Made by a program: the position numbers and the translations under genes
The notes under the pieces: generated by a model
The model's input: only the letters and a program-made list of their open reading frames with translations
What the model was told of the DNA's origin: nothing
The model's database searches: none
Shown: one piece after another, positions 7,930 to 46,532 of the stretch
Layout of the letters: every line of letters begins with the position of its first letter
Numbering within the stretch: position 1 is the stretch's first letter
Source: Hyphochytrium catenoides
Lineage: Eukaryota; Protista; Hyphochytriomycota
NCBI GenBank assembly: GCA_900088475.1
Contig: FLMG01003767.1
Location: 1-61,864 of the forward strand
DNA: 61,864 nt
Direction: 5' to 3'

Positions 7930-9115
7930 GCCGTGCGTCTGAAAGTTCCTTACAGCTTGGGTACAAGCTGGCCTGCTCAGTCAAAGTCTGTTCTACTAGC
8001 TGCTACTGCTCCTGTAAGGACAGTGCTGCAAAGCAGTCCGTTTGACTCCCGTAAGAAAAATCTCTGCTAACCATTGCGGGTCATCTCAGTTTGATAATAA
8101 GGTCCGGCGTCGCGAAGTGTGAGAGTGTGAGGAAACGTCGACCCGGATGCGCATCAGGCACTCATGAGATGTGAGTGTAGATAGGTTTTCTTGAAAAGGG
8201 ATTCTCTGATGTAAGCCCTTTTTGGCGTTTTTTCCCTCAGCATCAATACTCATATCAGTGGCAAGCTGAGTCCTGAAGAACATAGTCGTAGACCTATTGC
8301 TACGTAAGAGTTCAGGTGGAGTACCTGGCCTCCTCTTCCTAAGATCAGCCATGGCCACCTCAAACTCCTCTAGAGTCTCTGCTCTTGCTGCCTGATAAAC
8401 AAGGGCATGTTCTGCTGCAGGACTCAGCTTGCCCCTGATATGAGTATTGATGCTGGCAACTATGTGCCTCAGACAGTATTGATGCCCGGCATGAGGTAGG
8501 CAGCTGTGTACTGCATTGATAAGCCCTGAACTATGATAGAACTAAGGCTTTCTTCATATAGAGCAAAAAACAGCCGCGGTAAGGACATTCTCTCAGCTTT
8601 GTGCTTCTGAAAGGACAGTAAGAGGCTTTTGCTGCAGCCAAAGCAGGATAGAAACCAACTCCAATAATGCTCACCTTTTCGACAGGTACGAGTGCGAGGC
8701 AGATCGGAATGATATTATGCATAGCGTCCTTCACTGATACGACAAGCAGCACTCTTGTCTTGGTCATGCCGCCCATTAGGAAGGCACATATGGTAGTCAG
8801 TGCTATTAGCGGTAAATCTGTGAGCGTCTTCTATATCTTAGCGTCCAGGGCCAGCATTGGAATGCATTCCGTCCAGGGCCGGCATTGGAATGCATTTATA
8901 AGCTGCATCAATGCAAACTGATGTTATCAGAATGGATCGAGTAAACTGATACTCTCCATTTGAGGTGCCATCAATAGCTTGAGTGAGTCTCTACCCTGTA
9001 GAAACTACTACCAGGATTGTCCATCGCGACCGACTTCAAGTAGCTTTCCCGCTTTTGAGATGTGGTACTGTAGGACCGTTCATCACCCATTAGAGTTTCC
9101 ATCATCCTCTTTCTT
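7930..9115 (-). mobile_element. Decayed Mutator-like (MULE) DDE transposase
   Basis: Collinear fragments across frameshifts: KARKRMMETLMG...YLKSVAMDNPGS; QFTRSILI...CIPMPALDGMH (first catalytic D); VLLVVSVKDAMHNIIPICLALVPVE; LTVLSE...CFLLYMKKAL; ARAETLEEFEVAMADLRKRRP. Stops and an internal ~25-bp tandem duplication are present. Boundaries are approximate. Confidence 0.82.
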
Positions 9116-14167: not shown

Positions 14168-15886
14168 ATGGCGGCCGACGGTGACGCCGACAGCCCCCGA
14201 CAGGAGGAGAAAGATAGTGCGGGCGGCTTGATAAACGATGGATCAAGGAGTGAGCCACCGGGCAACTCTACCCTTGCCTCTGTCGGAGGAGAAGACTTGC
14301 CCACCTCCAGCTTCGATTCTGCCCTTCTAGCAGACCGCTCGTCCACAGTAGCTCACTACCTCCAACTCCCAAGCAGACGGCACTACACCTCTTCGGGCGA
14401 AGGAGGGCCCACTGCCGCCCATTTGAACTACAGCGGGAGCAGCATCTCGGGCGATGAGGACGATTATGATATTGATATGTATATGGCAGAGGTCACGCCA
14501 ACAGCCTCCACAGAAGAAGCAGATGAGCTTCAGAGCATGGAGCTATCGAAGGAGAAGAAGTGGTTCCGGAAGAGCCGGAAGAGTAGCTTGAAGGCTGAAA
14601 GAGAGGCAATGGGTCTTGCTTCCTTGGACAAACTGACAGAGAAGAACCCGTCCGCTAGCCCCTGGAGGGCAAGATCATACATCGTCCTCTTGCTTATCAT
14701 TATTAGCTGTGCGCTTCTGCCTATCACTATGCTGGTCTGGTACATTCGCGATCTCTTAGTAGACCCGGAGTACTGGGTAGCAGTCACTGGGCAGATGGGA
14801 AGGGATCCGATGGTACAGAGAGCCGTTAGCATCGCTCTCTCTCAGCACATGGTCAAGGAGATCCCTGAAGGCGTAAGGACAAGTTTGGAGGCCAACGGTA
14901 CCTATGATGATGTTCTTTTCCTCATCAACTCCACGTCACGCAGCGTTGTGAACAGCACAGCCTTCCCTGAAGCCTTCGACAAGGCCAGCTTTGCCGCTCA
15001 TTCGGTCTTTGTCTTCGCTTCCACGGGAGAACAGTCGTCACCCGCGGTAGAAGCAGAGCCTGGGCAAGTCTATCTAAACCTTTCTTCTTTAGCGGTTCAG
15101 GTGCGGGACGACCTAAGCCAGGAAGGATATGCAGCAGTTGTGGGGCCAAACACCACGGAGCCTTTCTTGATTGTCATCATCAACTCGACGGCACTGGCGG
15201 CGAATCAAGGAATTGTGAGAGCTGTAACTTCCTTTTTAGCCTTAGGACTGCTTGTCATCGTCATGATGATGTTTATCTCTGCGATGTCCGTGGCTACGAA
15301 CAGGAGGCGGGCATTTGACTTCATCTGCGTGGGCATTGGAATCGGCGCCGTCTCTCTTGGCTTGGTGGCAATGATCTCCATGGAGTATGCCTATTCTGGA
15401 GACTCGACAGAGCTTGGGCCGGTAGTTTCCAAGCGCATTGAGTTCTATATGTGGTCACCGCTTTGTCAAAGGGCTCTGATAGTCTATGCTGTCTTTATTG
15501 GCGTCTACTTTGCCTTACGAATGGCATATGCGGTGAATGAAGCGAGGAATAGCAATGTGACGACCAGGAATAGATATAAAGCTCTTCGGAGGACGTTCTG
15601 GATCTGGGGCCCCGTATTCTTTATGAGCGTTGCGGGCTATGTCCTCTTGGTCTACGGCTTTGTCTTCCTTGGACGTAGCTACGCGTACAGGGATGAGGCC
15701 ATCCTTGTTCTCTCTCTCGCTGGGGGCCTGGCGCTGCTACTGATCATGGTGTCAATGGTGATGAGACATCACACGAAGCGTCAGCAGACAAAGGCAATAG
15801 AGGCGTCAGGTTTAGCTAGTTCCTCAAGGGCCGCAGATGGACAGCGCGTGAGAAAGCGTGATTCCCCAGAAGCAAGTCCAGCCTGA
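14168..15886 (+). CDS. Intronless multi-pass membrane protein resembling an actinobacterial integral-membrane family
   Basis: 572-aa ORF: low-complexity N-terminus, one TM, a ~150-aa soluble domain, then about five TMs. Confidence 0.85.
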   Translation: MAADGDADSPRQEEKDSAGGLINDGSRSEPPGNSTLASVGGEDLPTSSFDSALLADRSSTVAHYLQLPSRRHYTSSGEGGPTAAHLNYSGSSISGDEDDYDIDMYMAEVTPTASTEEADELQSMELSKEKKWFRKSRKSSLKAEREAMGLASLDKLTEKNPSASPWRARSYIVLLLIIISCALLPITMLVWYIRDLLVDPEYWVAVTGQMGRDPMVQRAVSIALSQHMVKEIPEGVRTSLEANGTYDDVLFLINSTSRSVVNSTAFPEAFDKASFAAHSVFVFASTGEQSSPAVEAEPGQVYLNLSSLAVQVRDDLSQEGYAAVVGPNTTEPFLIVIINSTALAANQGIVRAVTSFLALGLLVIVMMMFISAMSVATNRRRAFDFICVGIGIGAVSLGLVAMISMEYAYSGDSTELGPVVSKRIEFYMWSPLCQRALIVYAVFIGVYFALRMAYAVNEARNSNVTTRNRYKALRRTFWIWGPVFFMSVAGYVLLVYGFVFLGRSYAYRDEAILVLSLAGGLALLLIMVSMVMRHHTKRQQTKAIEASGLASSSRAADGQRVRKRDSPEASPA

Positions 15887-18313: not shown

Positions 18314-18356
<43 letters not shown>

Positions 18357-18438
18357 NNNNNNNNNNNNNNNNNNNNNNNNNNNNNNNNNNNNNNNNNNNN
18401 NNNNNNNNNNNNNNNNNNNNNNNNNNNNNNNNNNNNNN
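18357..18438. other. Assembly gap (others at 19066-19120, 42284-42344, 47628-47647, 55890-55948, 59154-59207)
   Basis: N runs, several adjacent to CT microsatellites. Confidence 0.99.
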
Positions 18439-18665
18439 CCCCCTCTCCCTCTCTCCCCCTCTCGTTCTCTCTCTCGGGCGTTGATCTTAGGTCACACAGA
18501 TCCTATGAAAGATTTTGGACCATCCGAGAGCCCCAGAATCATTCAACCCAGAGTAACGCCTGTCTCATGGTCTTCTCTCTGCTCTGCTCTCTCCACAAGT
18601 CAAGGAAGAACCATTGCAGGAGCAATGATGTCATCCAGCATAATAGTGGCAGTTTACCCAGTCTA

Positions 18666-19180: not shown

Positions 19181-19548
19181 CCTTCTCCTCTCTCTCTCCT
19201 TCTCTCTCTCTCTCTGAATCCCTCACACACTCTTCCACCCTGCCACTGTGTCTCGTGCCCCTTCACCCTACAGAGATCCCAATTCCAGCATTCTTATTGC
19301 AGAGCTGAAGTGCAAAAGTTAGGACAGGGCGCTCGCGCCGCCGAGGAGATCCCGAAGTTCCGATCTCACTCTCTCCATCGCTCCTCCTTCACCAGCAGCT
19401 CATTGATTTCTCTCGTTGTCATTGGAGCTTCAGATCTCTATCATCGGCTGAGCTCATTGACACCACGGACAAAAGGAGACCGCGGCAAGATCTAAAAAGT
19501 CAGAGACATTGAGAGAAGCGTTGGACTATAAGCAACGGCGAAAGAACG

Positions 19549-20791
19549 ATGGTGATTCTATCACCTCGTCTCTTAGCATTTCTTTGCCTGTCGATGGCAG
19601 CTTTGCTGTCCATCAGAGCGCTAGCCCAGGCGGCGGACGAAGGTACCCCAGCGAAGCGATCAAAAAGAAAGAGAGATGTTGTCGAGGAGAAAAAGAAAGG
19701 GAGAGAGAGCTAGAGAACTAGAGCGAGCGTGTGGCACGAGAAGAGACGAGGATCACAATCAGAAAAAGGAGCAAGAGCGTGCGAGAGAGTGAGAGAGAGT
19801 GTGTGTGTGGAAGAGAGAGAGAGAGAGAGAGAGAGAGTGACAGGTGAAGGGATTAGGTCCACAATTTGAAAGTCGAGTATTTCCCTCTCTTTCACACACG
19901 TTTGGCACGGCCATCACTTCCATATCTCCTACCTTTGCTCTTTCTTCTCTGTCTCGCACTGACCTTCCCTTCTCCCTTTGTCTCTCCCTCTTCCGTGGCT
20001 CTCCCTCTGTAGGATTGCTTTACTGCACAGGGAAGATGGGCAGCTTGGCCACCACTTGCGCCAAGCTCTCTGTCAATCCTGAGGGGCTGGAGGAGTGCTG
20101 TGCCATTGCCGTAGAGCTGAACGAGCGCAACTGCTTTTGTTATCCAGAGATCACGACGAAGATGTCCGATGAAGAGAAAGAGCAGACTAAGATGCTTATC
20201 ACCGGGATGTGCAGTAGAGGAAAGTTTATCACGGGCGCAGAATGTCCAGCTGCGCTCAACAAGAGTCCAGCTGCTGAAGGAACCCCAACGAGTAGCACGT
20301 GAGACACTCTCAATCTCTTCGCTCCCTCCAAGGGAGAACTCCTCTTTCTGATCTCTGCAGTGCCAATCTTCTTGTCCCAAGTGGTCTCAGTTGTCTCGTT
20401 CTTCTGCTTACCGTCACTCTGCTTTCCTCTTTCTGTATGTCTCTCCTTCGCACTTCTCCCGTCTCCCTTATCTGTCGGCCTGACTCCGGGCTGTGCCATA
20501 GGCCACCGACTCCCCACGCTCCCGTCGTGGTATCTAACGGACAGTTGGGAGAGATCATTGCCAATCTCTCCCCTGAAGAAATACGGGAGCTTCTAGCTCT
20601 CTCGGCAGACCTGATGGACACGTTGAATAACATGATCTTTGGGGCGATGATTATCTACGGCATCTGTGTGCTCTGCTATGTTGCTGTTCTGGTCTACATG
20701 CGATGGAATAGGAACTCGGCACTACGTGGAGATTCAAGCGCAGCCAAGAAGGTCTGCAACATCCCCTTTTCTTCCTCTTTTCCTTCCTCCA

Positions 20792-20826
<35 letters not shown>

Positions 20827-23800
20827 TTACTACTGTTTTCCTCTCCTCTACAAGAAACTCCCTAGTGCTAGGACCTGTCCTTTCTTACAACGGCCACTTG
20901 TTTCTTCATCACTTTCTCGCACAGATGTTCTCACGACCGTCCCGCTATTAACGTCTCTTTCACTCTGCGGATCTTGTTGTCAGGTCATCCTTCCTGCCTT
21001 TGAGCCTCTGCTTTGGTTTATGGCCATCGACAGTATGGCTTGGTGGGGCCTATTTATTTATCTCTGGATAGAGAAGAGTGCTGACGAAGTAAGTAAAGCA
21101 TTCCTTTGACACTCTCATTGCCAATGATCTAACCCTCTCTCCTCTCTCTCTCTCTCCCTCTCTCTCTCTCTGCCCCTCTAACTTGATTAGCGGCACATCC
21201 GTCCCCTGTTTTTCTCCCGCGTGGGGATTATCTTGGCCCCCATCATCCTTCTTTATCACAAGTCCCTCTCTTTCCGGAACACTGGGATGTCCATCCTCTA
21301 CACTCTGATTATACAGGCACTTCTTATCGTCCCCTCTACCATTGACGTTATGTCTAAGTCAGAAGCGGAAGACTTTGGCACCAACCCTTGGTCGAAGAAC
21401 TCTATGTTGATGGCTTATCTTCGTATTCCTGTTATCCTTGGGATCATCTTGGCCATGGTTTACCGACCCGCTAGAGCTAGGTAAGGACCGTCAAGAATAT
21501 TCCTTGGTTGCGAAATTCCTTGACTAACACCGACGTTGTGTCTCTCTACCCTCTCTCTTGCTATTCTCTCTCCTCTCTTTTTTCTCTCATCCTCTTACCG
21601 TCATCACTTTCTTCCTGACCACGTAACTGCCCGTGTCCTCTCTCTCTCTTTCCGCCTCTGCTTGGTTACCTTCTCAACACATCCTCTACTCATGCCCTAC
21701 AGCCCGTTCACCCTCATGCTTTACCTGGGCTGTTGCCTGATGATAAACCTTCTCTACCTAAGTAACCTGATAGTGCAAGCTGCAGCGTCGTTTGGTAGGT
21801 GGAGCTGTGAAGCAGCACTGCTTAGCTCCTATCTCGTTGTGTTCCCTCTTTGCTCATGAAGCTTCCACACTTCCATCAGATCGTCCGGAGCTGATGAAGA
21901 CGGCTATGAATATTGGATGGGGTTGCTCCGTCTCCTGGCTATTCATCCCTCCTCTTACTTGGCTTCTATTAAGGGCAGACACAGGTGCGCGCTCTCTTAG
22001 TATCACCGCGAGGTCTAGCTCTTAGAAGAGGAATGAGAAGAATTAGAGGAGGGCTATGAGGAACTTGGTATCCCTTTCCTGAACAATTCCTCATAAAATG
22101 TGTCCTCCTCTGTCACGAATTAGACTTCTGGAGAGGCAAAGGACATCGTGCTGCCCTGATCATGCAGAAGATGGAATGTGAGAAGGATATGCCTGAGACG
22201 TAAGTCTTCACCTCTCAAAATTAGACAGGAAGAGTCAAAGCCATCTCACGCGCCTCCTTAATCCTCTCTGTAGCATCTGTGGCGATAAGATCCATACCTT
22301 CCTGGATGATAACAGGAGCTACTTCATCGATTTTGCCTTCATCAAGATGAATGAGAAGGTTGCAACCAACCTTGGTCGCACTTCCGTCTTTGCAGGGCTG
22401 TTGCATAACCAGATACCTGTGGCGATCACTGTGAGTGCCAGCCATTAGGCCGCTTCCCTCTTCCTTGTCCTGTCTCGGTTACTCTATAGGTAACAGATGT
22501 AACGCTAATGCCACTTGATGCTGTCGTAGATTTCAAATCAAGGAGGGAACCTCACGGACCAGCAGCTGTCCAGTGCCACCCGCCAAGCGATTCTTTGCTC
22601 AAAGATGAAACATCCAAATCTAGTAAGTTCTCCTCTTCTTCTTCTCGTTTGTCTACCGCATCAGCAGCACATTTTCTTTCTTGATCGCTATTATGATCGC
22701 TAGTCTAACTCTATGTTTTCTCTCTGCCTATCTCCCAGGTTCGCTTCGAAGGCATCTCTCTCCTCCCACCTCACATATTGATGCTTCACGCCTTACATGA
22801 GAAAAACCTCAGCACTGTTATCGGCAACGCTAAGCGGTCGATGCTTTTGGACATCTGCATGATGCTGGATGCTGCCAGAGCCGTCGCATACCTGCACCAT
22901 GCCTTCAGCCCTCCTATAGTACACAAGCATATCGTGACCGAGAACTTCCAATTGGATGAGAGCGTTAGGAGGTAAGACTCTAAAGTAGTCTAACAGAGCA
23001 GAATGTTGAGCAGACTGCTGATATCCTCATCCACCTGCTTTCCTACCCCTTCCATCTCTCTCCTTTGCTGCTCGGCCGTTCCTTGTATATGAACCTAGCG
23101 ATGGAAGGATCAGACTTGGAGGGTTTGAGCAAGCCATGCAACTGAGGCATCGCAATGGATCTACTTACCGAGTTTCAACTGTCTGCCGTGTAGAGGATGG
23201 GCCTTATCTGGTAAGAGGAAGTGGCAACCCGCCTCAGAGGTTTTCGTCCCGCTTTGTCTTCCTCTGTTGTTTCTCACCGCTATGTCCATCGCAAGCATCA
23301 TGAAGTGACAGAGAGCTAACCGATCTCTTGCGTGTAGGCTCCCGAGGTGCTAACTCATACTCTGAACTCCAGGAATGCCACTGCCGCGGACATTTACTCC
23401 TTGGGCATCGTATTGTAAGTTTTTGCTATAGCTCCACACGACATAAGGCTAAACTTCAAAGAAGGGAGAGAGGCCTAGAGAGGTTTAGGCAAGGCTGAAA
23501 GATGTTGAGAAGATCTCTGCTTTCCTCGTGCTGACGATGAGTTCCCGTCTGGCAGGTGGGAGATTGCGACCAAGTCTTCCTTGGCGGCCTATAAGACCAC
23601 GAATATTGTCCAGGTAGACTCTTCTTCTGTTTCTTCACCTGTTCTCGTGTTCTTGTGCAGAACTCAAGGGCTCTGCCTCTCTCTTGCTTTGTTTGTCCTC
23701 GTGTAGCTTCGCCATCTTGTTGGAGAGGAAGGGGAACGCCCCCCGATCGAGTGCATCAAGGATGTTGACCTGCATGAGCTCCTGCATAGCATGTGGGCCG

Positions 23801-25813
23801 CAGTCCCATCTGAGAGGCCACAAGCTCAGGATGTTGTCAAGTAAGCTCATATTCACATACTCTCTGTCTTGCTATGCCTCGAACCTGTCCTCCTATCCTG
23901 GTGCTCTTTCAACTAATTCGCCAATGCAACTCTCAGCTCCTTCAATTTTTCTCCTTAGAGTACTCGTAAAGACTCTTCACCGCCTCTCCTATTGCCATGA
24001 ACCTTACTGGATTTGCGGCTCTGTTCCTTGAAAATATAGGACCCTCGAAGCGATCCAAGAGGCACAGCTCCTAGACATTGCTACCGCTCTTCGGTCCTAC
24101 ATGGAAGCGAAGTACGCGCCAACTATGTCAAAAGCTACTCAACGGACGATGCGTCGTTCTGGGCGACCTTCTGTCCAAGAGGAGAGAATCGTTTTATTTT
24201 CTGGCGCTGCGGTGGTAGAGTTCCTGTTGCAGCAAGGCTTTGTTCAACACACGCATGAGGCGCTGAGACTGGGCCTTGCACTGCAGGATGCAGGCTACAT
24301 CCACCACTATAAGTAGGATGCACAGACCATAGCCTTTTTCTCCGTACTATCCACTCTCTGACAGTTGCTCTTCCTATTGATGAGCCTTTCCTTCATCGCT
24401 CCACTTTCACCGGAAGTTCCCTCTGCTTGCTCAATCAGAGAATGGGTTGCATCCTTTGCATCCCCTTCATCGCCATAGCCGTCACTCATTTGCTAACTTT
24501 GCATCTGTCCCCATGCTTCCTGTGCTGTTTAGGCATTCGGCCCCTTTCACACACACAAGAAAGAATCACTTCCGCTTCTCTGAGTTCACGCCTGCCCTGG
24601 GCATGGCCTCTGAAGACCATCGTCAGTTTGTTAACCTGGATGGGATGATGTATGGAGCCGTTGTCGGTACGAAGAGCCACCTTGTATGCTCTTCATCCAG
24701 GCCCTCTTCCTGCCTTGGGCTGCGCTGGCACTCTATACCCACTTCCCTCTTTATTCTTGAGCAATCCATATCCCTGCCTCTGACGCTAGTGTCTCTTTCT
24801 TTTTCCTCCGACCTTCTGGCCCCATTAGACCCAGGGAACCCTGAGGCAGCAAGAGAATCAACCCGCAACGATTGGGGCGCTTATCTTCACGATTCTAGTG
24901 CGCACAGTGGCAGTGTGAGAGGAGCTTCCTTTGACTCGGTCCAGACTTCTTCATTAGGCGGCACGACGACGGCGAGCGTCTTGCAGATCCCTTTTACTCT
25001 CAACAGCTGGTGCAACTGCAAGAGGATGGCTCAGGTTCGTGCTCTAAGCAAGCTCACCCTTGCTCCCTCTTCCAGGATTTCTCCATGCTGCCTTTCCTTT
25101 CCACTTATCTTGATGCTATCCCGTCTGCCTGTCTGCTTGGGGCGGGGTGAACCCTTTACCACTTTGCCTATGTGCACCTTGTACTCAGAGTTAAACTTTG
25201 TCCAATCTGTGTCTTCCCGCCGAGTCCGCCACTGACGCCTTATGCAACGATTACTCTCTGCGTTCTTTAGGGCCTAGAGCAGCCGACAGATAAGGCTCCG
25301 AAGGTCCTCCAGTCTTTGAAAGAGAAGTTCGAGAGAAGAGTCAACCAAATCGCAGGCAGTAGACAAGGCCGTACTAGTAAGGCAGCACGCACCTCGCACC
25401 ATCTCAGTCACGACGACTGACTAACACGCTCTCTTTCGTTGACTCTCCTATCCCTCTGTAGCTTCTGTTGCGGATAGCCTTATTGATGAGAAGAGGGCGA
25501 GCGTGTACAGCGCTAGACCTTCTACTTCGGGTCGCACTTCCCATGTGACGGACACAGAAGAACAGAGCGATCATGTGCTGCCTCTGGCTGCGACGGTCAA
25601 GCTGTACGAGGCTCACAAGGACAAGCAACTAGCTATCGTTATCTTCCCGGTACTACGGCATTATCTGTCTTTCTTGTATCGACGCTGCAGAATGACGACT
25701 GACTTGGCTTCTTTCCGATGTCTCTCTTACTGCAGAGCTCCGCGACCGAAGAAGGCGAGGATGGCAACCGCTCCTCCGACCTTCCATACCATCGCGTTTC
25801 CAGCAAAGATTAG
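19549..25813 (+). CDS. Receptor: signal peptide - 8-Cys (nsLTP/prolamin-like) domain - Pro/Thr stalk - 7TM - TKL pseudokinase - DEP domain; about 21 exons
   Basis: Phase-compatible GT-AG exons: 19549-19642, 20013-20298, 20502-20751, 20984-21088, 21191-21480, 21703-21794, 21880-21984, 22124-22199, 22274-22430, 22530-22622, 22739-22971, 23099-23210, 23338-23414, 23556-23613, 23707-23840, 24040-24312, 24533-24667, 24830-25034, 25271-25376, 25462-25649, 25736-25813 (later boundaries accurate to a few nt). Kinase-fold motifs: KHPNLVRF, AVAYLH, YLAPE, DIYSLGIVLWEI, PSERP. DEP motif: FSGAAVVEFL...EALRLGLALQDAGYIHH. Confidence 0.85.
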
Positions 25814-26950: not shown

Positions 26951-29900
26951 ATGAAGATTATCAAGAAGAACATCAGCAAAGATGGAGAAGGTTCCGTGGT
27001 TCTTCGGGCTGAGGATGCGGAGGACATGTTTCACGCGTACAACCTAATCTTGCCAGGAGACATCGTGCGCACAAGTACTGTGAGAAAGGTGTGCAGCCCG
27101 CTTCGAAGGGAAGGGAGTGCTTAAACTTTGATAACACGAGTAGAATAGACTGGAAGAGCTCTCGGCAAGGTACATCTGGACAAGGTAGCACCTTCTAACG
27201 TCGGTCTTTTACCTCGCAGGTGGTGCGCGAAGGCGTTACGGGCTCCACATCCAGCCAGAAAGTTCGGCTTAACTTGACAATAGAGGTTAGAACATTGCCC
27301 GAAAGAGTATATAGCAGCGGGGGAAGTAGGTCTCTTATCACCTCCTTCTGCACAGATTCAAGCTGTAGACTTTGATGCTTCTCAGTGCTCCCTCAGGCTC
27401 AAAGGGAGGAATAAGGAAGAGAACCAGTACGTAAAGGTATGAATGGGCCCGTGGCAGCAGCTAACGGAGGAAAAGCACATCACTTATTACCTCGCTCTCT
27501 CTGTCTCTATCTTTTTTCTCTCAATCTCTCCCTCTCTCTCCCGTCTCTGCTGCCCTCCCCCCATTCTTCTCCCTTCTCTCTCTTTCCTTTACTCTATCCC
27601 TCTGTGTGTGTCTCTCTCTATCCTCATCTCTCTGTGTTCTCCTTCTCTCCCTCTCGCTTCTTTCTCTCTCACTCCTGTCGCTTTCTCGTCCTTTCTGTCT
27701 CTCTCCTCTCTCGCCTTTTCTGTCTCTCTTCTTCTCTTCTCTTCCTATCGCTCGCTCGCTCGTTCTCTTTATTTCTTTCGCTCTCTTTTTTCCCTTCTTC
27801 TTTCCCATCCTTTACTCTTACCTCGTCTTCACCTCTGCCCCCTTCGCGACTTCCCTCCCTCCGTGATGCCGTGGCAATGAAGATGGGAGCCTATCACACA
27901 TTAGACCTAGAGATGAACCAAAACTTTACGCTGGAAAAGGCTCACTGGGACTCCATATCGATAGAGAGACTGCACACTGCGGCAAATATAGAGGAAAAGG
28001 CATGAAAAGCAGCTTCACACGCCTTAACAACGATCATCTTTGCTTCCCTTTTCTTTCTCTCTCTCCCTCTCTCACACAAACACGTCTCTCCTATGACAGC
28101 TAACCACCTCAGTCGCATCACCAGTTCCCATGGCTGCCGCGCGCCTCATTTTGATCCCTGTCCCTCTTTTCTTTGTCCATCGCCACATGCTGGAGGCGCT
28201 TCTGTCCATCCTCTAGCTGCGTATCTCTTCCATCCAATCTTTTATCTCTTCTATAGCGTGCACAGCTGGCCGCCTTAAAGATGCGTTCCTTGGTCTGTCA
28301 ACTCGCGTCGTGCCCTCCACTGTCTCTGATAGGCCTCCCAGGCCCTTACGTGTCATCTCATTACTCCCTCACTTGCTGTACATAGGCCGACATCGCCGCG
28401 GTGGTCATGTCCCTTGGCTTGGCCCACATCTGCCTTCTGACTACACATATGACAATTACCAAGTCACGGATAGAGATGAACATTCCCAAGAAGAGAGCCG
28501 GGAGCTCAGGCCACTCTAAAGGCATCGAAAAATTCTTTGAGGCTATTCTCCAGGTACGCCTGCGCATCCGTTCTGGACCATTAAGCCATCTCCCTCTCTT
28601 GCTTTCTCTTGGCTTGTTCATCTCCAAATCTTCCACCGCTTAATTCGCACTCTCTTTTGATCTACTTGCTTGCTGACATCCGCGTCCTTAGTGAGCGTCA
28701 GCCTACCCTAGAGTGCTCATTTCTTGGTTTTTGACCGTCGCCCTACCTCTTCTCTGACGTCCATTCTCCTCCACTCGAGACATCTCCCCTGCTTTCCCTT
28801 TGCCTGTGCCTGTTTCTACCGCTATCTTCCCACTTTAGCTAGCTAAGAAATTGCACCTACAAATTTTTACGTAGGGCATTCTGCGGCACATTGACTTTAA
28901 GCTGGTGAAAGTGGTGCTAATAGCTAGCCCAGCTTTCTACAAGGAGGACTTTTTAAAGTATATGATGGATGAGGCTGTTCGCAATGACTACAGGGTAAGT
29001 GGGACATCCGTGAGAATACTGGAGAGATCCAAAGACAACTGCATTCACAGAGATTCGTGAGAGAAAAGGAAGAGCCACGAGACTAGAAAAGCGTATGAGT
29101 GATGCTAGAGGGGTAGACTACAAGGTGGAAATGATGGGAAAGACCCGCAACAGAAAGACTGGACGTCATCACGGATGGACTGACTGACTTTATCAGATTA
29201 AGGAAGAGGTTTGATCTTCGTGTTTCACAGATTATAATAGAGAACAAGAAGAAGTTTGTTTTGACCCACGCATCTTCTGGGCACAAGCACGCGTTAACGG
29301 AAATACTGGCGGACCCTGTACGGCAAACCCATCTTCTCCTTCATTCTACGGTTCTCCCCACCATCGTTCTTATCGTTCTTTCCCATTGCCAGATCACGTT
29401 CATAGCGCTTATCTGACTCTGGCTCCTCTGGTGTGCTCTTGACGAAACTCTCCGTTCGCTGCTTTGTCTTCCTGGCCGTCCACTTTCGCTCGGTGCCTGA
29501 GTATTGTCCCAATCCTGCTGATTACGGCTGTTACAGAGTCTGCAGTCAAAGCTGGCTGACACTAAGGCAACAGATGACGTCAGAGCGCTCCAAGAGTTCT
29601 ATGACATGATGAACTCTGACCCTGACCGTGCTTACTACGGCTACAAGGTGAGTATCAGCCTTACTATGGTTCTGTCTTGGGAGATGCCGGCACATCACAA
29701 GTTCACTTCCCTAACTATATCTTTAAGCATTCTATCAATTCTGTCCTTCACCTTTCTCACCTTCACGTTGCTAGACCTCTTTGATTATTCTCTTGGTTAT
29801 GCTCTCTCTTTCCCTTTCCTCTTGTGCATCTCTATCTACTCTGTTTCTTTCGCGCTGCAGTTTCTGCGCAATCCTTCACGGTGCTATCTCTGCGGTCGGT

Positions 29901-37587: not shown

Positions 37588-39995
37588 CTACTCCTGCTCC
37601 ATGCTGCGCTGCCGCTGGTCCATGTGCTCCAGGAGAGAGTCACATTTTTCAATGAGGATCTTGAGGGCTTCTCGCACCAGCTCCTGCGGCTTGTACATGC
37701 CAACAGACTCTACCGAAACTGGAAGTATGAGGGCAGTGCAGTATCTTGTTAGAGCTCGGCTCATAAATGCAGGCGGTGGGAGTGAAAATCAGACAACAGT
37801 TCACATACATGGTGCACTAGGGATGAGGAGGAGAAGAGACAAGACTGAAAAAAGTAAAAATAAGCGCTTTCTCGACTTCGTTCACGTTGAGGACAGAGGG
37901 AGAAGGTTATTGGAGGGAGCGCGTCGAGAAAGGACCTTGAAGGGGCAGGATGCTTACATATAAAATGGTCCTTTCTCCGCATAAGCTTGACTCTATCGCT
38001 CCAGCCGGGCCCTCGGATGCACTCACGGCACATCGTACAGTCACGAGGTCTTGCCACTATTCCACGCTTCTGTCCCTTTCCCAGGTCTTCAATGTCGTAG
38101 ACGTTCATAGGGCACTTCTCAACCAACTCCTCTGCCAGCTCATTTCTTATCTATAGAGAAGCGCAGCAGCAAAACGCTAGCGTCAGCACTCGGAGACATG
38201 GGTGAGGTGAAAAGGTTGACATTTCGAACTTGGAACAGTCATTTAGCCAACAAACAGTCAGTGACGTTAGCAATGAGGCTGTAAACCGTTTTGCTAGGAC
38301 AAGTTACGTCCACATGCCAAAGAATGGCTAGGAAGTACGAGTACGAGATCTCAGTGAGAGAAAGAGCTTAGAAAGATTCGGCAGCGATAGAGAAGGGGAG
38401 GTGAGAACCCGTTGTACCACCAAGTGTCTCATGAAGAAGGAGATATCAGAGAGACAACGGACCACGAGGGGACAGGAGGTGTGCGAGCGAGTAGGCGAAA
38501 CGTGATACCATAAAGCAAAGGCATAGAGAAGGCATCGAGAGGGTGTTTACCTCCTCTTTAAGAACTATGTGGGGCTGCAATCTATAGCTAGCAGTGGAGA
38601 CTGGACTGAACTTGGCGTGATCCTTACCGATCCCCTTCCGACAATGCGCCTCCAGAGCAATTCCCTGCAGTGACACCTAGTTAGCTATGAGGAGTTGGCG
38701 ACCGTAGCTGAGAGTTGCGTCCCCTTGACGTCAGGTCCTTCTCTCGCCAGTGCTTTTTAGGTGCACACAATCTTCGCTACCGCCCACCTCCCTCTCTATA
38801 ATTTCTCTTTGTACGTCTTGCTCCATCTCTTTCCCAGTTCCCTCTTCGAAAGGTAACCCTAAACCCACCTGTCCTGGCTTTAGCTTGGCAATCAAAATAT
38901 CGTCATGGACTGGTTTGATTGGGTTCTCTGCATATTTATCTTGCTGTCCTCCCTGTGGCACCCATTCCAGGTGACGCGAATAGACTACACAGCAAGGCGA
39001 TAAGGGAAAGTAAGGAGGTGCAAGAGGGGAGGAGGGAAGCATGTGATGACAGAAAGTAGAGAGTTGCCGCGCCACTGGGCTAAGGAAGGGAGGTCTGACA
39101 ACGAAAAGCAAAGACATACATTGAAGACTGAACCAAATAACGAGGAGCTTCAAATCAGAAGCCTAGAGAAGAGCAAGCAGGCAAATTCTGAGTTGACGAA
39201 GTCAGGGACGGACGGCCTTACCTTTGGCGTTGATAGCATCTGCCGTGTTAGCAGGATCGTCTGCTCTGTCGATTGAACCCTTCCGCCTAGTGCAGTTAGC
39301 TACGAGCTTGAACACGATAGTATTTAAGTCTGTTGGCTCAGCCTCCTCATGCTCAGGAAACGGCTCAAACTCTCTAGGATCGACCTGTAGTGACAAGAGT
39401 AAGTCGAAGGAGGCATAACCAGACAAAAGACTTGATAACCCTAGAAGAGAACTAAATAGTGACAGAGTGCAGACAAACACAGCCTGTCAGCTAAGGGGTG
39501 ATGATCAAGAGAGAAGTGGAGTGCACAGGTGGGAGAAGAGAGAGAGGGAGAGAAGTAGGTAAAAGAGGACGAGTGTGATAGCGGCTGGGGAGACCCTCTG
39601 CGACCTTGATAGGAATCAGTCCTAATCGGTGGGCTAGAACTTCGTCTTGGATGATAGAGGAGTTGTTCCATATATACACGTGCTCAATAGCCATTGTCGG
39701 CACCTGGCCGTAGGATGTTAGCCGCAATTGTAGACTTGCAAGTAGAGAGCTGTGTGAACCATACCTCAGCAATGAGAATTCGTCTGAGGGCGTTGGCTAT
39801 GGAGGCATCAACCCCAATGAGGTCAAAGACGATGTCATTCTCAGTAAGGCTGATAATATTTATCTTCAACCTCTTTCTGAAGTCTTGCACAAACGCCTCA
39901 GGCTTAGCATACTGTGGCTCAATCAGCTTCGGATCCCCGAACTCCACATGAGGAGAGTCTCTCCCAACATGAACAGCGCCATAAGGAAATTGCAT
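37588..39995 (-). CDS. POLR1C: RNA polymerase I/III subunit AC40 (RPC40/RPAC1)
   Basis: [21 protein letters not shown]|VPTMAIE...[70 protein letters not shown]. Confidence 0.97.
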
Positions 39996-41091
39996 GGTGC
40001 TCCAACTCTAGGCGGCACCTCTGAAAAAGAAATAGAGAGCAATTGCTTCCCCTTCCTTGCCCTTGAGCTACTCCGGCAAGGGGCTTGACGTGGGTAAGGG
40101 CTAAGAACAGAAGCCGTCAGATGTGGCTATTGAAGGTCTGCAGACAGAGCTTCGCATCTCCAATAATCTTCACACCAATCATCTGGCCTCAGAAGGATAG
40201 CCGCTAACGGCCATTATATAACATCAACACAGAATCGCTTTCATTCATGATCGAGGGCCCTATTAGCAGTTTTCTCTCTAATCAATTGGTTCTATATTCG
40301 GGATTAGTAGAGGCTATCAGAAGGGAAAAGTGCCGTTTCGTTTGGTCTCTGAGGGAAGCTGAAAGACTGAGCGCTGAGAGCAGAGCAGAGGCTAGCTGGC
40401 TTTGGGTTAGACGTTGACTGGGAAGCCACATCCCACACCTGGCCCTCTCCCAGACCTCTCTCTCTCTCTCACTCCTTTCTCTCTCGGTGTCTCTCTCTCT
40501 CTCTTCTCCCCGTCTCTCTCTCTCTGCCACTCGCTCTCTCTCTCTCGGGCCGGTCTCTCTCTCTCTCCTCCTCTCTCTTTCTCCGCCCCCGCTCTCTCTC
40601 TCTCTCACCCTTTCTCTCTCCGGCTCTCTCTCCCTCTTATCTCCCTCTCAAACTTTCGCTCTTCCTCTTTCTCCTTTTGCATTATAAGTTATCTTCATAC
40701 CCTTTCTTCCTCCCAAATGGCTCTCCTCTTCCGCTCTCTCCCTCTGCTCTCTCTCGGATCGCTAAATGCATCGCTCTCTTTCATTTGCTTCACTTTCTCT
40801 GCCACCTGCACTCTTACAAGGCTGTAGTGCCAAAGGCAACTGACATGCCACCGAATGTGGCTGCTCCACTCTTACTTACAAGGGCCAGGAGGACCGGCGA
40901 CATTCGTTGACTATCAAGGGAGTTTCCTTCGAAGACAGTTCTTCCTCCCTTCCCAGCTGCAGTCGCAGGTCGTGCTACGTCTCAGCACCAACATTCATTA
41001 CCAATCCGAACACGTATCCCCTTTCAGCCTCATTATGATCCACCGATAGCTGTCCTCTTAGCCTTACAAAGAGCCTCTTTTCAGGAACAGC

Positions 41092-45403: not shown

Positions 45404-46532
45404 ATGGCTACCAAGAAGGTGGCTGTCTCCGACTGTACGTTGGGCGGATTGCACTGTGAGGAAGTGATTGCGGAAAATGTCCCTCTATTTATAGGATGTT
45501 TGGCCGCCGTCTACATCTTTCACTATCTCGTCGACGGGATAATCGTGCGTCCCTTAAGTAATCATCTTGTTGCTAGGAGAGTTACGAAGAGAGTGAAGGC
45601 CGAATCCCTTAGAGAATGTAGGTAGTCCTCCTTGCATGACGTGTTTTGTGCCTCCCTTTAATTCTTGTTCCGGTAGGTCTCTGGAAGCTCATCGCAACAA
45701 CCACTCTCTTCACCGCCGGCTGGGCCATTAACCATCAGGAGCCATGGTTCTTTAAACACTACTTTAGCCAGTGGCCATTTACTATGTCGCTGCCTATGAA
45801 GATTCACTACTTCTGCGATATGGCTTTCTGGATTATCTCCACGGACATTCACTTTTCTCTGACAGCGAAGCGTTACGACATCAAGCGCAAGGACTACTAT
45901 GAGATCTGCATTCACCATATTGCGACCTTATCCCTCATGGTTTTGGCGTTTTTAGTAGACGTTACGGAGATCGGTATATGCGTCATCCTTTTGCATGACG
46001 TGTCGGACATCTTCCTTGAAACTGGTGAGTGGATATAGCTATGTAAGTTGTCTTTACCAATATACTGACACCGCCAATCGATATCTTCGCAGCCAAGTTC
46101 TTCCGCTATGTGAACATTCAGATCCTTTGTGACAGCTTTTTCGCCATGTTCGTTGCCTCGTGGATCTACACCCGGCTATACCTCTTTGTGACCGGCATTC
46201 TACAGTCTGTCTTCACGGATGGCTATGCCCTACAGAAGAAGCTCGGCGATCTCAGGCACTATGACATCACCTCCCAGCAGTACTGGTGGATCTGGGCTGT
46301 TATCACTGGATTTCTTTGTCTCCTACTAGTGCTCCACACTTTCTGGTCCTTCATGATCGGAAAGATGCTCTACAATATCCTACGAGCTGGTCATGATGGT
46401 CTATCAAAGGATATTAGAAGTGACTCTGAGGTGGATGAGGACACATCTGCCCCTCAGAAACCTATCCAGGCGAACGGGGTAAACGGCACTCGGAAGAGAG
46501 CGAGCCAGCGGACGCGGAAAGCTTCAGAATAG
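45404..46532 (+). CDS. LAG1: Ceramide synthase (LAG1/CerS, TLC domain), 3 exons
   Basis: Lag1 motif KRKDYYEICIHHIAT...LLHDVSDIFLETAK, WIYTRL, and C-terminal DIRSDSE. Confidence 0.93.

Follow-up and report, generated by a model that had tools for sequence, protein, structure and literature searches.

An eight-cysteine module resembling the 8CM pattern of nsLTPs as the candidate sensor head of a 7TM-pseudokinase-DEP receptor

Analysis of the window, that is, the whole stretch of 61,864 nucleotides studied here, identified on its forward strand a gene in which a signal peptide is followed by a module with eight cysteines in the 8CM order, a stalk, seven transmembrane (TM) helices, a kinase-like domain that has lost its catalytic motifs and part of a DEP domain. 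Of the seven sequence differences listed in its exons 1-5, six are synonymous and one is conservative. The interpretation we favour, tentatively and at somewhat less than an even chance, is that the module is an orphan 8CM-like domain, probably mainly helical and held together by four disulfides, that serves as the sensor head of a 7TM-pseudokinase-DEP receptor. The module may work like an nsLTP-type domain; lipid sensing by the receptor is pure conjecture.

In the mechanism that we propose, exon 2 would provide the only cysteine-containing extracellular module of the receptor, and the eight cysteines would form four disulfides stapling a small, mainly helical domain. The phenylalanine in its CxC predicts a pairing of the LTP2 type (C1-C5, C2-C3, C4-C7, C6-C8). 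From the end of a Pro/Thr-rich stalk, which is probably glycosylated, the module would sense the ligand and thereby control the 7TM bundle, and the pseudokinase and DEP domains would pass on the output as scaffolds and not by phosphorylation. The ligand could possibly be small and hydrophobic.

The eight-cysteine module and its gene

Direct reading of the forward strand showed that exon 2 is bordered by AG at 20011-20012 and GT at 20299-20300. Its entry is in phase 1, so that its coding frame runs from 20015. The frame starting at 20013 was discarded; it gives a nonsense translation, whereas the frame from 20015 yields a peptide with the core C-x10-C-x12-CC-x10-CFC-x23-C-x10-C, in which successive cysteines are separated by 10, 12, 0, 10, 1 (Phe), 23 and 10 residues. 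The spacings given for this motif in the preliminary description were thereby confirmed exactly, as was the phenylalanine that it had placed within the CxC. The statement that a single exon encodes the motif is also correct under the inferred gene model, in which the junctions between exons 1 and 2 and between exons 2 and 3 are without RNA support. The module comprises approximately 78 residues (8.5 kDa), is acidic (pI 4.86), contains no tryptophan and is more polar than typical nsLTPs. The ectodomain as a whole is made of 140 residues, and its cysteines are exactly the eight of the module.

A strict regular expression for the 8CM matched a single site, the one in exon 2, when all six frames of the window (61.8 kb) were scanned, and had zero matches in 200 mononucleotide shuffles of the window. 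When eight cysteines were placed at random in a span of 74 residues, 1.5e-4 of the placements showed the 8CM order and had every gap within 8-30. The pattern is rare and non-trivial, yet a chance match could occur when very many cysteine-rich modules are scanned.

Eleven exons were chained into one gene model (Table 1), with AG/GT at all borders and phases that agree from exon to exon. The frame stays open for 593 amino acids, so that the protein has at least this length. In the chained product, the order is signal peptide, eight-cysteine module, Pro/Thr-rich stalk with an NKS sequon, juxtamembrane helix, seven TM helices and kinase-like domain. Exon 1 shows a hydropathy peak over residues 2-26, corresponding to the hydrophobic core of the signal peptide; judged by inspection and hydropathy, an AxA-type site follows and the module starts 5 residues on. 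The phases of exons 1 and 2 would join as g + ga to give a glycine. Hydropathy peaks revealed five of the seven TM helices; the other two, TM2 and TM7, were recognised by eye in the spliced model. No GPCR family of Pfam matched the 7TM part when its exons were scanned singly.

Table 1 Coordinates of the exons and domains of the modelled receptor gene
Feature	Positions	Strand	Content and remarks
Exon 1	19549..19642	+	ATG and signal peptide with ALA-QA cleavage-type site; ends in phase 1; GT donor at 19643
Exon 2	20013..20298	+	286 nt; whole eight-cysteine module and start of Pro/Thr-rich stalk; phase 1 in, phase 2 out
Eight-cysteine core (within exon 2)	20024..20245	+	First to eighth cysteine
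Exon 3	20502..20751	+	Remaining stalk, juxtamembrane helix and TM1 (hydropathy peak at residues 172-190)
Exon 4	20984..21088	+	TM2; 3' end confirmed by RNA-run contig X4
Exon 5	21191..21480	+	TM3-TM5; contig X4 covers 21191-21379 with a spliced 5' end
Exon 6	21703..21794	+	TM6; GT-AG borders, consistent phase, hydropathy peak
Exon 7	21880..21984	+	TM7; recognised by eye, its hydropathy not reaching the automatic cut-off
Exons 8-11	22124..22199, 22274..22430, 22530..22622, 22739..22971	+	Cytosolic linker, then kinase-like N-lobe through catalytic loop
Further kinase-like exons	23097..23841	+	Boundaries approximate; C-lobe piece at 23707-23841
Partial-DEP exon	24101..24316	+	C-terminal to kinase-like domain; Pfam DEP matched on the exon taken as 24032-24316

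The sequence following exon 2 also allows a second product to be read. If intron 2 were retained, positions 20299-20302 would bring in ACG followed by TGA, an in-frame stop one codon into the intron. The putative product would be free and secreted, with about 126 amino acids that make up the signal peptide, the eight-cysteine module and a short Thr-rich tail, and would belong to the size class of an nsLTP precursor.

The earlier suggestion that the domain may have arrived by exon shuffling found no support. The 286-nt exon lies between introns of phases 1 and 2, and because it is asymmetric, a simple insertion by shuffling would break the frame. Both the composition of exon 2 and the pyrimidine-rich introns on its two sides resemble the rest of the locus.

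The window as a whole has a high intron density and low-complexity, pyrimidine-rich introns. GC skew and AT skew are negative over most of its length, genes on the + strand included, which points to pyrimidine-rich introns on the coding strand. A run of N at approximately 18350-18440 (an assembly gap) lies within a long CT/GA microsatellite, and repeats of this kind fill many of the introns in the window. The density and composition of the introns and the position of the gap inside such a repeat agree with what has been published on the Physarum genome (PMC4758236). Several other putative coding regions were read by eye: a MULE-transposase-like frame (8089-8541, -), an exon closely resembling the N-terminal dehydrogenase domain of the peroxisomal multifunctional enzyme type 2, with GxxxGxG and VVVNDLG motifs (462-809, -), an exon like that of RNA polymerase I/III AC40 (39687-40007, -), two long exons of a TLC/ceramide-synthase-like membrane protein (45640-46529, +) and, directly downstream of the receptor, an N-terminal exon like that of pelota/Dom34 (26951-27124, +, and following exons). 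A single-exon open reading frame of 572 amino acids with several hydrophobic helices is found at 14168-15886 (+). It has no Pfam match and no match in a collection of 5.8 billion protein clusters, itself included; the absence of the protein even as itself indicates that the proteins of this genome are not in that collection.

Fold and affinities of the module

The strongest alternative to an 8CM-like sensor head is a cysteine-rich domain peculiar to this lineage and folded differently, which would match the 8CM by coincidence and would either bind a peptide, protein or glycan or be structural. We consider this alternative quite possible, about half as probable as not. The cysteines themselves argue against it. 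Their order, C..C..CC..CxC..C..C, is that of the nsLTP/8CM superfamily (LTP_2 PF14368, Tryp_alpha_amyl PF00234, Prolamin_like PF05617), and the five gaps of the module (10, 12, 10, 23 and 10) all fall jointly within the n = 8-30 described between the cysteines of land-plant nsLTPs (PMC9832785). A hydrophobic X in the CxC marks the type II pairing (PMC9832785), and the module has a bulky hydrophobic residue at this position, like type II nsLTPs. It also resembles nsLTPs in its preceding signal peptide, its mass of about 8.5 kDa and its lack of tryptophan. The combination of CFC with a 23-residue gap between C6 and C7 fits what we take to be the type II arrangement and counts against a coincidental match as well. 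The composition of the module points the other way. nsLTPs have masses of 6.5-10.5 kDa and a pI that is usually 8.5-12 (PMC2277411); the acidic, polar module is unlike most of them and fits only minor acidic types, such as the type C nsLTPs with a pI of 4-7 (PMC9832785). In addition, the frequency of the 8CM among random placements is not negligible when the scan is very large, which favours a coincidental match.

Sequence searches produced no homologue and no profile match, in agreement with a domain of different fold. The module had no Pfam family at E <= 1, nor at E <= 10 with two different boundaries; LTP_2, Tryp_alpha_amyl and Prolamin_like, the families to which the preliminary description had pointed, were included and gave zero matches even at the looser threshold. 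A sequence search of the PDB with the module returned no match, and a word-index search returned no relative. No true homologue was found by phmmer among 1.84 billion representative proteins, a scale at which relatives below about 40% identity miss an E value of 1e-3, so that this negative result excludes close relatives only. Three phmmer matches (a mucin, a repeat protein and a bacterial TSP3-repeat protein) were rejected as spurious, being due to low-complexity repeats. Metagenome scans returned nothing, either with the module or with the better conserved TM exon 5 as query, and no sequences intermediate between the module and the nsLTP family were found in the searches.

In the nsLTP superfamily, four helices form a right-handed fold that has four disulfides and surrounds a hydrophobic cavity. 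Structure prediction for the module by AlphaFold2 without an alignment gave pLDDT values of 55.2 for the whole exon peptide and 48.6 for the trimmed core, making the models unusable. These low-confidence models contained helices in two segments, the one with the CC pair and the one ending at C7, together with N-terminal strands; the strands and the lack of a helical bundle are in line with a different fold. Foldseek with the first model (pLDDT 55) returned only noise (E > 1).

The neighbourhood of the module in the ESM-Atlas was of another kind. Approximately 93 of the 100 nearest clusters carried a Pfam family of the prolamin clan (LTP_2, Tryp_alpha_amyl or Prolamin_like), and the best cluster reached a score of 0.83 with 167 shared features. 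When clusters with these families were skipped, the best ones were unnamed 'bifunctional inhibitor/LTP' clusters (0.76 and 0.70), followed by LLG1 as the next different family (0.61) and by elicitin (0.49). The fact that the neighbours belong almost exclusively to one superfamily, even after its Pfam families have been skipped, argues against an unrelated fold. The score itself lies within the range of noise, as a different fold would allow: one third of shuffled proteins reach 0.8 in this search, and the three-helix TM exon of the same gene, used as a control, scored 0.84 to unrelated bacterial membrane proteins, so that the 0.83 of the module is only a lead. Among the searches and fold predictions, this language-model neighbourhood is the only positive sign of a link to nsLTPs.

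A second alternative is that the module is a true member of the nsLTP/prolamin family, either inherited from before the green plants or transferred from a plant or an alga, and that it holds a lipid in a hydrophobic cavity. The order and spacing of the 8CM, the signal peptide, the size, the hydrophobic CxC residue and the Atlas neighbours all fit this alternative, and algal nsLTPs were likewise found only by a search for the 8CM pattern (PMC9832785). We nevertheless regard true membership as unlikely: the clan's Pfam models have no match at E <= 10, no intermediate sequences were found, the exon is asymmetric in phase, its composition is host-like with pyrimidine-rich introns of the host type on both sides, and a large membrane receptor is not a known context for the nsLTP family. 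Because two of the defining features of the family that were tested were not found in the module, membership is not established. We assign a low probability to the full claim that a genuine lipid-binding 8CM of the nsLTP fold exists here outside green plants as the ectodomain of a 7TM-pseudokinase-DEP receptor.

RNA coverage and strain variation of the gene

A first search of RNA runs for the 6-kb gene returned none, and a second returned one weak contig from an RNA run, covering a single junction. This contig (X4) aligns with exon 5 over 21191-21379, and its loose end, GCTGACGAA, corresponds to the last 9 nt of exon 4; the exon 4-5 junction is therefore spliced as modelled. Exons 1-3 had no RNA coverage among the runs searched.

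Comparison of the window with the best-covering DNA run (X1) gave seven listed differences in exons 1-5. As read from the codons, six of them are synonymous (19557, 20167, 20254, 20688, 20689 and 21265), and the remaining one, at 20283, is a conservative replacement of Thr by Ser in the stalk. The two that fall within the eight-cysteine module, 20167 and 20254, are both synonymous. In the introns, the same run differs from the window by substitutions and indels, and the introns flanking exon 2 carry substitutions and an insertion. The bias of the differences towards synonymous changes speaks for purifying selection of the frame as modelled. A contig of 158 nt from a soil metagenome (X5) covers 20549-20706 in exon 3 with four differences, and the two that are listed (20688 and 20689) are both synonymous.

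Many of the variants of X1 across 19500-25499 are present at approximately half depth, which suggests two haplotypes or two strains. Others in the same interval are present at full depth, which marks a difference of strain between the run and the assembly.

A reading in which exon 2 is no true coding exon of this gene, but an open frame arisen by chance or an error of the gene model, would agree with the missing RNA coverage of exons 1-3 and the zero protein matches in databases, but is very improbable given AG/GT phases that fit both the signal-peptide exon upstream and the TM exon downstream, a frame that is open and meets a stop directly upon entering the intron, strain differences that are synonymous only in the module while its flanking introns carry substitutions and an insertion, and a downstream junction of the same gene that was seen spliced.

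Receptor architecture and comparison with known systems

The kinase-like region gave two colinear, sub-threshold matches to PK_Tyr_Ser-Thr: one in exons 8-11, covering positions 66-136 of the profile (E 0.17), and one in the further kinase-like exons, covering 218-255 (E 0.15). Direct reading of 22274-23841 (+) showed that VAIK is replaced by VAIT, HRD by HKH and DFG by GGF, and that the APE and the C-lobe signature are kept. With the VAIK lysine, HRD and DFG lost, the domain is a pseudokinase. The exon that follows matched Pfam DEP with E values of 1.1e-5 and 1.8e-5. The match covers positions 18-55 in a profile of 72, since the exon holds only part of the domain, and its score for this reason stays under the gathering cut-off.

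As judged from its sequence, the layout of the putative receptor matches that of the GPCR-TKL-DEP 'bigram' receptors. According to PMC5784254 (van den Hoogen et al. 2018), GPCR-TKLs carry a TKL kinase behind their 7TM part, and about half of them also have DEP at the C-terminus; they are reported from oomycetes and elsewhere only from Amoebozoa, and in P. infestans DEP lies C-terminal to the kinase in 8 of 17. Members were later reported in acanthoecid choanoflagellates, and none has been functionally characterised (PMC12716839). Like these bigrams, the protein encoded here has seven TM helices towards its N-terminus, then a putative TKL-like kinase domain and then DEP in one chain. It is unlike them in that its kinase domain is devoid of the VAIK lysine, HRD and DFG, and in that an eight-cysteine ectodomain with a signal peptide stands before the 7TM part; the portions of PMC5784254 used here mention no N-terminal domain. 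An architecture of the oomycete/amoebozoan type makes it likely that the receptor is non-plant, as had been proposed from the start. An apicomplexan origin, at first considered on account of the CT-rich introns, was dropped in view of the bigram architecture, the half-depth variants in the DNA run and the genome traits that fit Physarum; the host is likely to be a non-plant protist, probably an amoebozoan.

For none of the GPCR-TKLs has a ligand or a function been established (PMC12716839), and a defined extracellular head therefore offers an experimental handle that can be expressed and screened. Should the module have the lipid-binding fold of nsLTPs, a superfamily long deemed plant-specific would extend to a non-plant protist, where it would be used as a receptor sensor and not as a free carrier. 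With a genuine head of this fold, an 8CM domain would for the first time be a direct part of a transmembrane signalling protein, and its occurrence outside plants would mean that the fold predates Viridiplantae or was captured by transfer. Should the fold be unrelated, the module would warn against identifying nsLTPs by the 8CM alone, which is the basis of the algal lineage.

That algal lineage is the nearest precedent at the level of the pattern. Algae were long considered to lack nsLTPs until a green-algal lineage was reported in 2023 through a search for the 8CM pattern, BLAST having failed, and lipid binding has been shown for some of its members (PMC9832785). The module resembles these green-algal proteins in being recognisable only by the 8CM pattern and a signal peptide and not by BLAST. 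They have extended gaps of up to 50 residues and are free proteins of less than 60 kDa (PMC9832785), whereas the module has canonical gaps and is fused to a receptor. It is further set apart from nsLTPs, which are free secreted proteins, by its position as the N-terminal head of a receptor of more than 590 amino acids, in a host that is apparently outside Viridiplantae.

With regard to its place in the receptor, the module finds a parallel in the fungal Pth11-type receptors, in which an N-terminal CFEM domain forms an eight-cysteine, helical, ligand-binding head before the 7TM part. CFEM had no Pfam match in the module at E <= 10, and its cysteine pattern, unlike that of the module, has no CC pair and has other gaps. 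What the two receptors have in common is an eight-cysteine head in front of seven TM helices.
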